Of a stretch of DNA of 57,957 bases, positions 50,776 to 57,957 are shown piece by piece. Origin of the DNA: Oikopleura dioica. Lineage: Eukaryota > Animalia > Chordata. The stretch covers positions 1 to 57,957 of the forward strand of contig CAJRAX010000006.1 in the NCBI GenBank assembly GCA_907165135.1, written 5' to 3'. The notes below the pieces were generated by a model. That model worked only from the letters and a program-made list of their open reading frames with translations, was not told the DNA's origin and searched no databases. Within the stretch, counting starts at the first letter, position 1, and every line of letters begins with the position of its first letter. Both the position numbers and the translations under genes were made by a program.

Positions 50776-51049
50776 ATTCATTTTTTGAAATAATAAGTTC
50801 AAGAAATAAACCTCTTTTTCTTATCTTTTAGTTTGTAATTGATTTGATGCAGGTTATCCACAATAACATTGATTATAAAAACACCAGTAAATCACTCTCA
50901 ATAGCAGGCTAATCAAGAGCATATGGAAAACAAAGCAGCCTGCATTCTCTTATAAATACAAGAATAACCCGCTTGAAATTCATGAACCCTTAAAAATTCA
51001 AAACCCCCGCGCGCTTCCGCATCTTTTCCTTCACAAACTAATTGTAAAT

Positions 51050-54000
51050 ATGACAAGGAGAGCTTATTACCCGAAAATTCCGCAGGACGAAAAAGCAAAA
51101 TATGCAAAAATAAGATTAACGACGAAACAACGTTACGTTAAAAGAATTCTAGTGGCGTCTTTTTATTTTTTCTACATCCTTGTCGGCGCATACATTTTCA
51201 GCTTACTTGAGCATCCCCTGGAAAAGAGACTCTGTAATGAAGCGATTGAAGAAATTGAAATTCAGTAAGCATCAGTGTCCCTTTCACTATCAAATGTTCT
51301 TGAAGGATCGAAAATTACGAGAAAACGAAAGAGTATTTGACCAGAGAGCTTATTTTTCCAAATGCGACCCTCCCACCAGAACTGAACATTACAACAGCAA
51401 TATTTGATGTCTCGACTCTAGCCCCAAAAACGATCCTATCTACCCAAAACTTTACTGTCGCTGAAGCAACTGAAACTTATTCAATATCCCCGGCACCAGC
51501 GAGAATTCGACGGCAAGTAAATATTGATAGCATTCTGTTGGAGTACAGCTTCTGTACCCACAACGAAACGGGGGCAATCATCATGGAGCTTCCAGATGAT
51601 GATATGCTGATGATCTTGCGATCCTCCCACGAGGATTTTTTCTCTCACACAGTTTCTATTTCGGGGATCAACGAGGAGAACAAGGAATTCGAGAATGCTG
51701 ATGAATATAAAAGGTAAATTTGCAAGTTCAAATGATTACGATTCAATTTTAAATTTAAGTTTGTTTGGAGGACTAAAGACTTCTTCGATAACAACAGGAC
51801 TTCGATTTGTAAACGATTTCGCTCAATTAACGCTGAAATGGAGTGGCTCAACTGCGATATGTCTTGAAAGATTGATTCTCAAGCTTCCGAATGGGATGCA
51901 AGCCGATTTGATTGCAAAGGAGAAGAGAAACGCAAATTATATTTGGTTCAGTACTAAGTGCGATGATTTTATCGACAGGAAAGAGTTTGAAATATCAACG
52001 AACTGTCGTCAAACTTCAAACTACTTCTTTGATTACGAGTGGACGTCTTGGGCCGACTGGGGAAGCTGTTCAAGCTCATGTGGACTTGGCACCAGGCAAC
52101 GAAGTCGATCTTGTGGCCAAAAGAAGCAGAATTATAATGAATTTGCAGCTATTCCAAGCGAAAGATTCACCGTTTTGCCCGTTGATGAAGTCCGACTTTG
52201 CGCCAATCTTGAGGAGGACTACATCGAAAACCAGCCTTGTTTGAATTCAACCTGTCCGGTTATCACTGAATGGTCGAACTGGTCTGATTGTTCTGAGACT
52301 TGTGGTACTGGAGTTCTTTATCGCAATAGAAAGTGTGAAGTGTCTGGTGATGAATGTCTTGGTGGAGAATTTGAAGTAGAGAGTTGTGAAACAAATGAAA
52401 AGTGTGCGACTGCAGTGTCACCTGAAAATGTAACCATAGACAATATGACAGTGTCAACAGGATCTACTACAGTTTCTCCATCGACAGAGGAAGCTAGTGA
52501 CTGTGTTTGCGAAGAACCTGAAGTTAAAGAAATCATCAAAGAAGTCGATAAAGTTATAGAAGTTGAGTCCGAAGAATGTGAAGCATTGAAAAGACAGGGA
52601 CTTCCACCATGTGTTTATGAAATCATGCAGAACATGACGTATATAAACGGAAAAAGTAATCTTTTGTTCGACCAAAGTGCTACGGTAAGCGTATCTGATA
52701 ATTTACGGTTACTAGAATTTCAATAGTTCAGCTTCACTTTGGACAATGTCAGAATCCCCTATGCTCTTGATGGCAACGTGACTGACATGCTGATGGAAAT
52801 ATCGAGAAATCTAACCGTCGTTACCCAGAACTTGACTTTATTTAGTTACAACTTGACAGACCCAGTATTTGAAAATGTAACAATTGGTGAGACTCAAATT
52901 TGGGAATTCGGTTTGACAAGAGCGAATCTTGAGGCCAGAAGGCTTTCAGAATCAATTCTATCATCTGTCAGTGGGATTATAAGAGACGAAGTGGAGTTGC
53001 TTGTTGAGAGAGCAAATCTAACAGTTAATCAGTCAATAGAACTCATCGATGTGAAGCAAGGAGACCGGCTGTATACTATCGCCAAGCTTCAAAAAACACG
53101 AGATGATGTAGGAAACATAACGTGCGAGGTGGACAGTCTTTTTGAACGATTTGTAGTCGACTTTCTTGTTGACGAACCTAAGCGCATCAAGCATATTATT
53201 AACGATGTCAATTCAGTAATCGACGAGCTAGAAGAGGCAAAGAGTCAATCGATATATTTTATGAGAGCCTTATCGACTGAATTCAGTAGAAATCTCACTT
53301 CAGCTATAGAATCAGAAATGAGAATGGCGGAGGAACTGAAGCAAGTAGAACTCATTCTTATCAACAAAGAAAAGCTGGTTGAAGATCAATCGGAGAAGAT
53401 AGACACCTGTGGGGCCAATCTTGAAAGTACTCTTGAAAAATATTTGGATTGTCGGGTTCCAAAGAGGATGATGAACGGATCGATTTACGGAACAGACTCC
53501 TATCTTCAGCCGGAAAAGAAAATACACGATTCGCTCCAAAACTTCGTTCCTTCTTATGGCACTGAAAATGGAACATTCACTTGTCCGAATTTCTGGAATT
53601 ACAAAAACTCTCTTTTCTACGTTTTCAATACTATCGCCGTTTTGGGGAGCAAAGACATGGAGCCCTTCACAACATCGGGAAAGGTTTTCAAGGTTTTTTA
53701 TTCGCTTGTTGGCATCTGCGCTTTCCTGGCTTTATATTTCTCAATTTCTTCATTTGTTCTTGCGAAGGTTAATAATTACGCTGACAAGCTTGGGAAGAAT
53801 TATTCGTCTGATAAAAAGTATAGAATTCACGTTGGTTTTGTACTTTTTCTTATTTCATTTTGGGTTTGCTTTCTTGTGCTTATACCATCGAATGCTATTT
53901 CACAGGTGAAGTTTTTAGCGAATTCATCAGGTAACATTGAAAATTATTAGATCGAAGGGTGGTCCTTTGGCGATTCTGTGTATTATCTAATGTCATCATC

Positions 54001-54459
54001 CTTCTTCTCTGCAGGCACAGATACAGGAAGGGCGAGAATTCAATCTGTCACTATATTTATTTTCAAAATTCATCGCCTAGTAAGTCCCAAGCTTTCTGCA
54101 TGATAATTACCTTTTATCCATCTATCGAATAGTCATTATTATCTGGAACTTCATGAGCAATGCGAGTGTTTTCATCATCTTTCGATACCTGTTTTCGATT
54201 TCGCAGACTGTCGTTACAGGTTTTTTTGGTCTACTTGATTATTTATAGACAATTATTAGCACGAAAGCGTGAGTTTGAAGAAAGCATCAGACAAAAACAT
54301 ATCGTTGAAAGAAATGTTCATTCGAATGAAGTTGTAAAACACGTCCCTATCCCTAAACCAAGAAGACCGAGGAATGAGCTTCGAGAGGAAGAAATCACCG
54401 CGAGAAGAAATCAATATGGAAATCATCGAGTTCGTTATATGCACAATATTCATCTTTAA
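51050..54459 (+). CDS. Two-pore-domain K+ channel-like protein (~1,050 aa) with ~750-aa extracellular insertion containing 2 TSP1 repeats; degenerate filters
   Basis: M1 YILVGAYIFSLLE..E; P1/M2 WNYKNSLFY..EPFTTSGKVF.VFYSLVGI; M3 hydrophobic; P2 EGWSFGDSVYY; M4 YRIVIIIW; TSP1 WTSWADWGSCSSSCG..RQRSRSC and WSNWSDCSETCG..YRNRKC. ORFs 51050, 51337, 51695 and 52739 are joined by in-phase GT-AG introns. Confidence 0.75.
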
Positions 54460-54538
54460 TAAACTCTTCTTACTAACTCCTAATATTTACTCTGCGCTTT
54501 GCTATTTGTTCTGATTTGTGTTTTTATTGAAAAAAGAG

Positions 54539-55055
54539 ATGGCTAGAGCCTGGATAAAAAAGAAAATTTTACTGTTACCGCTGCCAGTATGAACAATTTT
54601 CAACTGACTATCAGAAGTACGAAATTGATTGTAGATCTTGTGGGGAGAGATTGTTTGAAATTGAAGAAGAACGTGAATATCACGGTGATGGGCGGCTTTT
54701 TGGATATTATAAATGCATATGTGGGAGGTGGTGGGAAAGCGCTTATGCTCAACTTGCTATTTCATCAGTCCCCGCACTTCCTCAGCCTCAAAGGAACAAT
54801 TTTCATACGAGTTCACAACCACATGGAAATCCGACAACCACCAGAAGAACGAATATGCGTCATGACCGATATACTGAGCCTGTCTACACAAACCAGCCGC
54901 TATCTTATTCAACTTTTCCTTATTCATCCACAGTTTCAACAAGAACAGCTCGAAACAATGAAGAAGATTGCTCCTGTTGCCAGTGTCTTTTCTGTATATG
55001 CAAGTGCTTTTGCGGACTAATAGTTATTACTTTCATCACGAATATCATTAATTAG
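54539..55055 (+). CDS. Small Cys-rich protein with partial 3CxxC/ZAR1-like motif and Cys-rich hydrophobic tail (5' end tentative)
   Basis: RLFGYYKCICGRWWESAY; C-terminal CSCCQCLFCICKCFCGLIVITFI. The upstream exon YCYRCQ|SCG joins in phase but needs a 1-nt correction to reach the ATG at 54539. Confidence 0.45.
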
Positions 55056-55659
55056 TTTTAGCTAAAATCACTGACCCGCCTAATTTTTAGATTACTGATC
55101 TGTCCAATAAACATAAATAACAATTACTTGCATGAAACACATTTTAATAGTTTGTTCTTTGCTTGGTATGTTTTCCGTATGTCCGGGTGCCCCCCCCCCC
55201 AATTATATTTTCTAGCAGCGTGGAGAAGCGCCTTTTTAGAAGCGCTTATGTAATCCGGAGCCAATTGCGGGTTCTCGGTGGTGTAAGTTGTACCTGCTGG
55301 CGCTGGCACCGTCGTAAATACTACTGTACCTAGCGAAGGTGTAGTATGGAGCGGTGCAGTACTATTACGATTCTAGTGCTGAGCGAAGTCGCTCCAGTAG
55401 GTGGAGTTGGAGCCAAATCGCATGGAACAAGACGTTCAATCCTTGCCCGGATTATCAATTTTTCCGAGAAAAATTAACAGCAATAAAGCCAAGCTCTAAA
55501 TCCACCTAAATAAGACCTAAAACCCCAAGAGAAAAAATTCGAAGCTCTTAGAGAATCAAGAAGCCTTCTAAACTGGAAATAACTGAGAGGCCATGGTAAA
55601 TTACCGTTTCTAAAAGAGTAGAACTCGTCTGAGAACATCAACTATTCCAATTTGGGAAG

Positions 55660-57957
55660 ATGAAGAAGTTTTCTATATGTGGCTATATTCTAGTCACCTT
55701 GATAAATATTGCATGTTGTGAGAAAACCACAAATCCATACTTGCTCAAGGAATGTTAAAGAAATTAATATTTTAGTGTATCTTCAAAATACGTTAGGTGT
55801 AACAATTAAATTATCCCTGCTTTGTGTAAATATTTCTACCACTTATTGCATTAGGTGAGTATATTCAATCATAATGGAGAGCGGAAGAAAAATAGCCACA
55901 CTTAGCAAAGACGCTAACATTATTTTCACCATAACAAAAATTACTATCCAAAGGATTTCTAAAATGAACATAAGAATCAACGACAATCGTGCGTTTATAT
56001 TTCGTTAACACAACACAAGTTTCTTTATGATACGCAATCGAAATCGTCACCGAAATTCAACTTAGATGAATTTATTCAAGAGGACACACTATCTGGCTGG
56101 AGCAAGTGGACCGAGTGGTCGCAATGCTCGAAGCGTTGCGGCAGCGGGAGACGCATGCGTTATCGGACTTGCCGGACGAACCTCAAAGCTGCTTTCTCAA
56201 AATATTTAACTGGCGCAATTACCTTTCATCAATACCTAAAGGATCAGGTCGCACTCTAGCAATTATCTTAGTAGAAAACGCTCAAAACCAATATTTTCTA
56301 AAAAAGTGCAAACTATTATAAAAAAAAAGAACTAGAAAATGACGTTTTTTTGACCTTTGGTAAAGCGAACACCAACCTGCTTTGGCCAGCCTCTCGAATA
56401 CCTACCTTGCAACGTACACTCGTGTGGGTTGGCATGGAGCCAGTGGGAGTCCTGGTCTACCTGCTCAAAGACTTGTGGGTTTGGAGGTCAGCAGGCTCGT
56501 CTAAGATCATGCAAGCTCGAAAGTCCCAATTTCGGAGTAGCGAGTGGAGAATTTTCCGGAAATCTTGCGATGGAATTGTTTCTCAAGACATATTCAAAAT
56601 GCCAAGGAAATGGATTAGAAAGCCGAAAATGCTCTGTGAAAGTTTGTCCTGCTACGCATATCAAACAGAAAGCAGACTTATTGGAACGACTCAAGCCTAG
56701 AAGCGAGTCGTTTGAGCTCTCCAAGTCTGGATCCTTCGATTGGATGGACTTCTTGATGATCCAGACACTATCGAACGATATCAACTTTGATTTGTCAGCC
56801 GTTGTTGAGATCAACTTATCCGAAAAAGATAATCAATGGAGTGAGCATCTTCTCAACCTCTCTCAGCCCAGTTCACAAAAGCTCAATCTTTGTTACTCGG
56901 CCGTGTTTCTGTTGATGAAGATTATGTTGCACTTCTGATCAATTTCTCGAAAGATGAAGAAGGAAACGGTAAAAAGGCGCGAGTGCTGATAAGAGCGTCG
57001 GAAGAAGACTTGAAATGGAGACAAGCCGAGGTCGAAAATGGATTCAATATCAAGCTCCGCGAAAGCTTAGAAGCAAAAGGCTTCAAAGTTGGAGAAATTT
57101 CTGTAGATTCTGCAACGTCTACGCTCAATTTCTGCACGTTTTTCGGAGATTCGAAAAACGCGGAACCACAGTGCGAAAACGGCGGTTCGTGTTTCACTCG
57201 CAAAAGGGATGATCTGTCGCTGCCCGATCGAGTTTTACGGAGCTAAATGCCAGCATCAGCGATTCGCCCTCCCTTCGAAACCAGAATTTTTGACCGTCGT
57301 GGCAAATTTCAACGAAATCATCATCAAATGGCTGCCGATTTTCGAAGATTCAAGCAGCAATACAGTCATCGAAAGTTTGAAAGTGTCCATCGGAAGCGAT
57401 GTCTACAGTATTTCCGACTTTAATTCCAATCAGCTCAAGAAATCAATCGCTCCTGATACCGAAGTTGAACTAAAAATTCACGTTATCTACAAAAACGGAA
57501 TTATGGCTGAGTCTGAGGTTTACAACATTAGATCTGCTCCGGAACTTCAGAAGCCTGAGATTCTTGAGCGACTCTCAAATATTGTCAAAATGAAATTTGG
57601 TGACGACTCTCTTGTAGAAAGATATACAGTAATGCGCACATACAAAAAGAGGATTGGTAAAGACAGATACAGTGCGCCCATTTTCGAAGGTAGATCCGGA
57701 GAGATGAATGTTGTGCCCCAAATTGCATTTCCGAGTGGACGAGATGTTACTCTTGCGATTCAAGGCCAGACTGAATTCGGCTTGACTAACATCAAGGAAG
57801 TCACAATAAGAATAAAGCATGCAGCTCCTCTCTTTATTGCCGAAAAAATAAAAGTGGGAATCACTAAAGTGGAACTTTACTGGAAACAGGAAATGGACGA
57901 AGAAGATGCTTCCGTGAGTATGCTCAGCTAAGGTTACTTTCAAGCCAGGAAACTTTT
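55660..57957 (+). CDS. Extracellular multidomain protein: signal peptide?, 2 TSP1, SEA-like, EGF, multiple FN3; runs off the window; two compensating frameshifts
   Basis: WSKWTEWSQCSKRCG..RMRYRTC; WSQWESWSTCSKTCG; CENGGSC..CRCPIEFYGAKC; FN3-like PSKPEFLTV..IIIKW. The link from the putative signal peptide MKKFSICGYILVTLINIACC at 55660 to the exon at ~56081 is not resolved. Confidence 0.7.

Follow-up and report, generated by a model that had tools for sequence, protein, structure and literature searches.

Two K+ filters are the defining trait of K2P channels. The window analysed here, a stretch of 57,957 nucleotides of Oikopleura dioica DNA (contig CAJRAX010000006.1), carries a K2P-like gene in which neither filter can be recognized. 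This raises the questions of whether the loss is real, how it arose and what a K2P fold without its filters may be used for. The gene lies on the + strand (51050-54459) and was read from the sequence as seven exons encoding 1045 amino acids, with all 1045 codons free of interruption of the frame. The predicted protein consists of a K2P-type M1, an ectodomain of about 750 aa with two TSP1 repeats, and the series P1-M2-M3-P2-M4. Four hydrophobic segments were found by hydropathy in K2P order (aa 32-54, 834-865, 881-910 and 947-968). Family and homology searches were run exon by exon, and the joined translation served for coordinates, hydropathy, alignment, dN/dS and tree construction. The features are collected in Table 1. 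The C-terminal tail motif is common to the gene and to P0154 (VQYMNNINV), a relative with canonical filters. The stop codon of exon 7 lies inside an AATAAA signal.

Table 1 Features of the K2P-like gene, with positions in the window
Feature	Position	Strand	Content	Evidence or remark
Exon 1	51050-51264	+	Start codon, N-terminus, M1	Sequence reading
M1	51146-51208 (aa 33-53)	+	K2P-type motif GAYIFSLLEHPLE	Hydropathy peak aa 32-54; kept in L003, L004 and L008
Intron 1	51265-51305	+	GT-AG	Splice sites and open frame
Exon 2	51306-51713	+	Ectodomain	
Intron 2	51714-51759	+	GT-AG	Exon 2/3 join read across by orthologue P0004
Exon 3	51760-52684	+	Ectodomain	Exons 2 and 3 hold the two TSP1 repeats
TSP1 repeats	52040-52114, 52271-52336	+	Two stretches	Pfam TSP_1, E 1.2e-15
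Exon 4	52727-53905	+	Coiled-coil part of the ectodomain, pre-P1 motif CRVPKRMMNGSIYGT, P1, M2, M3	
P1 pore helix	53591-53635	+	FWNYKNSLFYVFNTI	Aligned to TREK-1 pore helix; 13 of 15 identical in other lineages
P1 pseudo-filter	53636-53665	+	AVLGSKDMEP	Ungapped HMMER alignment to TREK-1/2
M2	53678-53770	+	Within exon 4	Hydropathy
M3	53819-53905	+	Within exon 4	Hydropathy
Intron 4	53906-53950	+	45 nt, GT-AG	Only in the window's lineage
Exon 5	53951-54026	+	P2 pore helix IEGWSFGDSVYYLMSSS (53951-54001); start of P2 pseudo-filter, FFSAGTDT, from 54002	
P2 pseudo-filter	54002-54026, 54085-54089	+	SSSFFSAGTDT/VP	
Intron 5	54027-54084	+	58 nt, GA-AG, phase 1, inside the P2 filter codons	Comparison of genomic copies
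Predicted exon 5/exon 6 junction	Across intron 5	+	GATACAG/TCCCAAGC	
Exon 6	54085-54219	+	End of P2 pseudo-filter, VP (54085-54089), linker SFLHDNYL, M4 (54114-54200)	
Intron 6	54220-54259	+	40 nt, GT-AG	Frame restored to conserved tail; 44-51 nt in other copies
Exon 7	54260-54459	+	Cytoplasmic tail (ARKREFEES...RVRYMHNIHL) and stop codon	Conserved in L002-L004

The P1 domain matched Pfam Ion_trans_2 with 28.7-29.7 bits (cut-off 22.5), and P2, scanned as short exon pieces, gave no match to this family. The best matches among solved structures were TREK-1 and TREK-2 (KCNK2 and KCNK10; PDB 8de7 and 4bw5), with an E value of 1e-11. The K2P order M1-P1-M2-M3-P2-M4 was recovered, as K2P structures align from P1 to the P2 helix and P0154 together with TREK-1 through M4. 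TREK/TRAAK-type channels have the same order and share with this protein the pore-helix motifs W..S.F(F/Y) and EGWS..(D/E)S.Y(F/Y), the P..T..GK after P1 and the (Y/F)(K/R) before M4. In contrast to these channels, TxG(Y/F)G is replaced in both loops, GIP..G of M2 and GLA of M4 are missing and M4 contains a 4-aa insertion. The short helical cap, about 55 aa in TREK/TRAAK, was not found either; M1 and P1 are instead separated by about 750 aa that include two Pfam TSP_1 domains. A literature search returned no paper joining K2P channels with thrombospondin domains and none on Oikopleura K2Ps.

A preliminary description of the locus had stated that both pore loops are devoid of the K+ signature and that the pore-helix motifs beside them are conserved, and the present analysis agrees on all these points. 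P1 (FNTIAVLGSKDMEP) stands within the long exon 4, and its filter-equivalent decamer is placed opposite TTIGFGNVSP of TREK-1. Since the filters of TREK-1 and TREK-2 align with P1 in HMMER without gaps (E 1e-11; TIGFG = VLGSK), the register given for this loop in that description is right. In P2, the decamer FFSAGTDTVP aligns opposite TTIGIGDFAP of the nearest canonical relative, a reading that depends on a GA-AG intron supported by comparison. The signature T-x-G-(Y/F/L/I)-G is absent from both loops, which read VLGSK and FSAGT in all five genomic copies. Of the four signature glycines only one remains, both threonines have disappeared, and a lysine occupies the second-glycine position of P1. 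The sole surviving signature glycine of P1 is the first one (VLG); P2 has alanine at this place and a glycine one residue later. The flanking motifs FWNYKNSLFY and IEGWSFGDSVYY are conserved. Among 236 pore domains from the 150 nearest cluster representatives (of 1.84 billion proteins), [TSC]xGxG fits 212, and VLGSK is restricted to the protein's own clade. The filter loss is neither chance nor assembly error, since the motifs recur in four further assemblies that are independent of this one. A corrected sequence with GYG or GFG, named beforehand as counter-evidence, did not come to light: the other assemblies read alike, and a scan of all frames over the entire window found no concealed exon that could supply a canonical filter.

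The GA-AG intron underlying the P2 reading is predicted from the comparison of genomic copies. In-frame stops occur inside it in all five copies, and its lengths (58, 56, 56, 59 and 56 nt) are unequal modulo 3, with the spliced frame open in each. The donor AG/GAA(A/G)GGCG is conserved across copies and fits the published GA-AG context of O. dioica (PMC7072748). After splicing, the spacing of P2 equals that of P0154, in which there is no intron at this place. All copies retain the stretch that follows, VPSFL..YLLS(I/V)YRIVIIIWNF, which is aligned with APSF..FLSIYRV in P0154. The neighbouring intron 4 is absent in L001-L004, which read straight through (SNAISQ-IEGWSF), and the exon junction at this intron is thereby fixed exactly. 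A GT-AG form of intron 5, with GTAAGT at 54080 and AG at 54131-54132, was rejected for a stop after seven codons; this AG is missing in L001-L004, where coding sequence passes through. An M4 exon starting at 54133 was likewise discarded, the conserved VPSFL..YLLSIYR placing the acceptor at 54084. The alternative GC donor offered in the preliminary description (54015, giving SA/VP) fared less well than the long form: the GC is not conserved in other lineages and the spacing is wrong relative to P0154, which the long form reproduces exactly. The shorter variant appears less likely and may occur as a minor isoform. From four RNA runs labelled as this species, only 12 partial reads fell on 50900-55100; they match at 90-95% likeness, span no joint and do not amount to a test. 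Five reads at 53861-54001 carry T at 53884 and A at 53890, the letters of L001-L004. Another lineage's orthologue is the probable source of these five, which give no more than a hint of transcription.

The comparison covered five independent genomic copies, which represent three or more lineages. The P1 decamer was invariant at 10 of 10 positions and the P2 decamer at 8 of 10, against 70-72% identity in the rest of the core. Overall, pN was about 0.15 and pS about 0.8, with synonymous sites saturated; omega was 0.07 for L001 vs. L003 and ranged from 0.07 to 0.2 over the comparisons. Changes had hit 6.0 of the 6.2 synonymous sites of the P1 decamer and left every amino acid as it was. The substitution pattern supports purifying selection on the K2P scaffold, that is M1, both pore helices, M2-M4 and the C-terminal tail, and in this respect the earlier proposal of a scaffold kept under selection was borne out. 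Its second half, a filter released from selection, was contradicted. As P1 stays invariant and P2 nearly so while synonymous sites are saturated, the sequence comparison indicates that the replacement loops are at least as constrained as the scaffold and that selection on them is not relaxed.

The nearest relatives, P0154 (locus L008), P0155, P0005 and P0021 from marine metagenomes, have retained the filters TIGYGN and TIGIGD. Colinearity of L008 with the gene analysed here extends from M1 across the TSP1 repeats as far as M4. These canonical proteins have in common with the Oikopleura protein M1, the TSP1 repeats, the coiled coil, the pre-P1 motif C..C/MNGS(I/F)YG, the core and a tail ending in ..YM(H/N)NI.., at about 35% identity. 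They have GIPFFG in M2 and GLAW in M4, whereas GIP..G and GLA are lacking here, and they are free of the P2 intron that this gene possesses. In the tree, the canonical and the degenerate clade join at 100/99 support; the stem of the degenerate clade measures 2.43 changes per column and its internal branches 0-0.23. Since the nearest relatives with the whole giant-ectodomain architecture keep both filters, the filter loss is, as judged from the tree, derived and placed on the long stem branch.

With slightly better than even confidence, we interpret the protein as a K2P-fold membrane scaffold without K+ conduction, whose pore loops serve a new, constrained role. It derives from a K+-selective K2P in which the giant TSP1/coiled-coil ectodomain was already present. 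Along the clade's stem, TIGYGN of P1 became VLGSKD and TIGIGD of P2 FSAGTD, the predicted GA-AG intron now interrupts the P2 filter codons, and GIP..G of M2 and GLA of M4 disappeared. Afterwards, purifying selection froze the new loop sequences. Because of the missing glycines and threonines and the lysine in P1, the stack of backbone-carbonyl K+ sites would be unable to form, so that K+-selective conduction is most likely, and any conduction probably, absent. By analogy, the assumption that this is not a K+-selective channel is reasonable, since a single Gly-to-Glu exchange in one K2P filter abolishes the current and makes a non-conducting, dominant-negative subunit (PMC11364637). The gene is intact and under selection, and its predicted product is a K2P-fold membrane protein with four transmembrane segments and two pore loops, presumably a dimer. 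Such a dimer may anchor the ectodomain in the membrane or give it a platform for signalling, and the pore loops directly beneath the ectodomain would form a conserved structural or interaction surface.

The strict conservation of the loops, the retained glycine of P1 and the acidic mouth (KDME, TD) also fit a pore of altered selectivity, and helix conservation in M2 and M4, a requirement for a pore, persists as well. Such an ion channel might be a non-selective cation or other leak in which Ser/Thr, Asp/Glu and Lys face a widened pore. Within the core, conservation is highest in the loops, as expected if they still line a permeation path; the pore helices are retained along with M2 and M4, and K2P filter variants may shift selectivity without abolishing conduction (UNC-58, PMC11513965). 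We nevertheless regard this as unlikely, as the combined loss of three of four glycines, both threonines and the introduction of the P1 lysine goes far beyond the change in every conducting K2P variant that has been characterised, the hinge motif of M2 (GIP..G) and GLA of M4 are lost, and single mutations of a filter glycine suffice to silence K2Ps (PMC11364637). It is still more doubtful that the protein is a regulatory or dominant-negative subunit, which would form heterodimers with a canonical giant-ectodomain K2P via the coiled-coil/TSP1 ectodomain and the core and thereby tune or silence its K+ current. A canonical-filter clade of the same architecture exists, the two clades have similar internal diversity (~74-89% vs. 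~76% identity), as expected for two paralogues in one set of species, and the silent TASK-5 and its G95E variant are a precedent (PMC11364637). The canonical members, however, all come from marine metagenome contigs, and a canonical copy in the same genome is conjectural. L009 showed no synteny to the window, the GC content of L008-L010 is 35% vs. 42%, and the identity of about 35% between the clades over the ectodomain argues against a common dimer interface. The tree node bearing on orthology vs. paralogy of the canonical clade had a support of 86/13.

A decaying pseudogene or an artefact of gene model or assembly, either of which would make the "filters" meaningless, is highly improbable. 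Word searches and a cluster look-up found no annotated Oikopleura protein for this gene, the RNA on it is limited to the partial reads mentioned above and one intron is non-canonical. Against such decay stand the open frame, the agreement of five independent assemblies, the low omega values, the splice sites conserved despite varying intron lengths and the C-terminal motif, conserved even in the canonical clade.

To our knowledge, the known "silent" or atypical members of the K2P family all retain the GxG core. Trk/Ktr/HKT transporters conduct with a single glycine per loop; the first filter glycine, which they have in every loop, is present here in P1 but not in P2. TASK-5 (KCNK15), G95E and dominant-negative G-to-E mutants share with the predicted protein a K2P fold, a charged residue replacing a filter glycine and, presumably, the lack of a K+ current of its own (PMC11364637). 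Such silent subunits differ by at most a single substitution, confined to one loop, and act via heterodimers with close paralogues, whereas the protein described here has new sequence in both loops, fixed in all its lineages. Evolved filter variation with functional consequence is also seen in UNC-58 and further C. elegans K2Ps whose filters are atypical (PMC11513965). UNC-58 keeps GYG (TCGYG) and is a working K2P that passes Na+ as well as K+ (PMC11513965), whereas GxG itself is gone from both loops in Oikopleura.

The replacement of both filters and the subsequent conservation of the new loops constitute a natural experiment on the K2P fold without K+ selectivity, which might then serve as scaffold, receptor or regulator, or form a pore whose selectivity is new. 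For chimera and ion-substitution work, a ready comparison is offered by the sister clade, whose members share the giant ectodomain and have intact filters. The case is further relevant to how the annotation of Oikopleura misses gene models that contain GA-AG introns. With evenly balanced confidence, we suggest that the locus may document a channel-to-receptor transition in a chordate, in which a K2P channel already equipped with a giant adhesive ectodomain gave up conduction and the filter loops became a new, strictly conserved extracellular structural or binding element of a "pseudochannel" that selection has maintained in deeply diverged lineages, or else a pore selectivity unseen in K2Ps.

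The site of filter loss lies in a compact plus-strand gene of the Oikopleura type with tiny introns, whose model combines open frames and splice signals with four orthologous contigs of genomic sequence (L001-L004). The coding total of 3138 nt corresponds to 1045 codons and a stop codon located within an AATAAA signal. Exons 2-4 specify a ~750-aa ectodomain that contains two TSP_1 repeats recognised by Pfam (E 1.2e-15) as well as a long helical section; P1, M2, M3, P2, M4 and a basic tail come from exons 5-7 together with the end of exon 4. Four membrane segments (aa 32-54, 834-865, 881-910 and 947-968) were indicated by hydropathy. Family scans and searches were run per exon, and the joined translation was used in local scripts only. 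The P1-bearing exon matched Pfam Ion_trans_2 above the cut-off, and the best matches of the core profile among solved structures were K2Ps, with TREK-1 and TREK-2 at E 1e-11. From four RNA runs with the same species label, 12 reads aligned in part, at 90-95% likeness, and none spanned a joint. The exon 4/5 junction was fixed by L001-L004, which lack intron 4 and read SNAISQ-IEGWSF directly. This intron before P2 is present in the window only; an intron in the coiled-coil exon occurs in L001 (1672-1909), L003 (5446-5504) and L004 and is missing from the window. Intron turnover in the gene is high across lineages.

Coordinates of the K2P-like gene and neighbouring features in the window
Feature	Position	Strand	Remark
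Exon 1	51050-51264	+	Typical K2P N-terminus and M1
Exon 2	51306-51713	+	Part of extracellular stretch
Exon 3	51760-52684	+	Part of extracellular stretch
Exon 4	52727-53905	+	Extracellular stretch; 3' end starts P1-to-tail coding
P1 decamer	53636-53665		Former filter
Intron 4	53906-53950		Before P2
Exon 5	53951-54026	+	Within P1-to-tail coding
P2 intron	54027-54084		Putative GA-AG intron
Exon 6	54085-54219	+	Within P1-to-tail coding
Exon 7	54260-54459	+	End of P1-to-tail coding
Downstream interval	54460-55210		Apparent insertion
Conserved element	55215-55475		Candidate non-coding RNA
Next gene downstream	56357-57931		Apparently extracellular-matrix type

An ungapped HMMER alignment placed T-T-I-G-F-G-N-V-S-P of TREK-1 over A-V-L-G-S-K-D-M-E-P in P1, in agreement with the string and register of the preliminary description. 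Substitutions affect both threonines, the aromatic residue and the second glycine, which has become lysine; what remains is the first glycine, the proline and a subsequent P.T..GK motif. No exon with a canonical filter was found elsewhere in the window. In P2, the frame past IEGWSFGDSVYYLMSSSFFSAGTDT meets a stop within 25 codons, and the conserved continuation (VPSFLHDNYLLSIYRIVIIIWNF...) sits in a different frame. Comparison of the copies points to a GA-AG intron (donor AG^GAA(A/G)GGCG, acceptor AAG^T(A/C)CCAAG), the sole splice uniting the P2 halves in frame in every copy. Such introns are frequent in O. dioica, where an AG upstream and an A downstream are conserved (PMC7072748), which is exactly the donor context seen here. 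The interval is interrupted by in-frame stops in all five copies (window and L001-L004) and can hardly be aligned. With lengths of 58, 56, 56, 59 and 56 nt, it sets the flanking exons in different relative frames in different copies, and splicing gives an open frame in all five. Spliced P2 reads F-F-S-A-G-T-D-T-V-P, compared with T-T-I-G-I-G-D-F-A-P in the intron-less canonical relative P0154, and both have the same number of residues from the filter Asp to the LSIYR motif. The alternative GC donor 12 nt upstream, considered earlier, is unlikely because it is not conserved and would delete four residues. An acceptor at 54132 was rejected, as its AG is absent from other lineages and coding conservation crosses it.

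A word search retrieved orthologous pieces (P0001-P0004) from Logan and marine metagenome assemblies. L001-L004, the contigs to which they belong, contain all or most of the gene, with DNA identities of 67-71%. In comparisons of the window with these four, a core of 240-288 codons exhibited a saturated pS of ~0.8 and a pN of 0.15, and L001 and L003 differed by a dS of 0.71 and a dN of 0.05 (omega 0.07). Every position of the P1 decamer (10/10) is identical in the five copies, and the window's copy differs there from each of the other four at 6.0 of 6.2 synonymous sites. In the P2 decamer, 8/10 positions are invariant and the only variable ones are both x of G-x-D-x; identity in the remaining core is 70-72%. 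The reported loss of the K+ signature from both filters is real, as the signature is missing from both loops (VLGSK in P1, FSAGT in P2 of the window) in all five copies. Saturated pS, low pN, the invariant P1 decamer and the largely invariant P2 decamer rule out sequencing error as well as the earlier view that the filter was "released". Comparison of filter and scaffold revealed purifying selection on the scaffold and no relaxation of the filter, and constraint on the new loops equals or exceeds that on the scaffold.

The K2P-like stop is separated from the conserved element by ~750 nt in the window and by only ~75 nt in L003 and L004 (L003:6734-6808). The longer interval contains overlapping ORFs (54589-55020 and the Cys-rich 54651-55055) and appears to be a lineage-specific inserted gene or element. 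The conserved element (~260 nt) shares 86-88% identity with L003:6808-7078 and with L004, and the neighbouring gene's synonymous sites are saturated between these lineages. Conserved in all frames, with a long stem in a two-sequence consensus fold, a T run at its end and no Rfam match, it qualifies as a candidate for an unknown non-coding RNA. The next gene encodes a TSP1 repeat (WSQWESWSTCSKTCGFG), an EGF-like stretch and repeated beta-rich modules, which suggests a second extracellular-matrix-type gene adjoining the K2P relative.

When 1.84 billion cluster representatives were searched exhaustively with a profile, one cluster was returned for the K2P-like protein. The next-best match, P0005 (E 5e-26), shares its pre-P1 motifs and has the filters TIGYGN and TVGIGD; a second word search added P0154, P0155, P0021 and others. 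L008, the contig encoding P0154, is colinear with the window's gene (M1, TSP1 repeats, coiled coil, M4) and has the same ..YM.NI.. motif at the tail end. A giant-ectodomain K2P family thus exists, with one canonical and one degenerate clade. A maximum-likelihood tree joined both clades at 100/99 support, with P0169, an ordinary O. dioica K2P, as their next relative. Branches within the degenerate clade are short (0-0.23), and its stem measures 2.43 changes per column; on the stem, M2 GIP..G and M4 GLA were also lost and four residues were gained in M4. Of the 236 pore domains present in the 150 nearest representatives, 212 conform to [TSC]xGxG, VLGSK is confined to the degenerate clade, and a few unrelated proteins have other degenerate loops. 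One of them, P0107 (313 aa), is a full-length K2P-like protein whose short cap is ordinary and whose loops read LVGNP and IGFYD. Since it is unrelated yet degenerate in both pore domains, filter loss may have occurred more than once in K2P relatives.

The silent or atypical K2Ps TASK-5 and UNC-58 keep the GxG core, whereas the protein described here has lost it; no paper on Oikopleura K2Ps or thrombospondin-domain K2Ps was found in the literature searched. K+ selectivity in the superfamily requires a two-glycine main-chain geometry and the threonine hydroxyl. Three of four glycines and both threonines of the signature are lost, as are the M2 and M4 gating motifs, from which we infer that K+-selective conduction would not occur; any conduction is probably absent. 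A single Gly-to-Glu exchange in one K2P loop results in a non-conducting, dominant-negative subunit (PMC11364637). The main alternative, a pore with new selectivity, could draw on the loops being the best-conserved part and containing Lys, Asp and Glu, and small K2P filter changes can re-tune rather than kill the channel (UNC-58, PMC11513965), but the extent of these losses makes it unlikely.

A regulatory subunit pairing with the canonical clade is a doubtful proposition which presupposes both clades in one genome. No synteny of the canonical-clade contig L009 with the window was found, and word searches and cluster look-up returned no proteins of either clade from named Oikopleura genomes. 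The GC content of contigs L008-L010 differs from that of the window, that of L005-L007 does not, and the tree did not resolve the node bearing on the canonical clade as a paralogue within the species or an orthologue from other appendicularians. A pseudogene or artefact is highly improbable given the substitution pattern and the conserved decamers. We lean, with slightly better than even confidence, towards a non-conducting dimeric membrane platform for the ectodomain. The protein would carry the ectodomain in the membrane as a dimer, and the former filter loops, directly beneath it, would be kept as a structural or interaction surface. It is a K2P relative in fold and sequence, and not a K+ channel by the family's defining signature.
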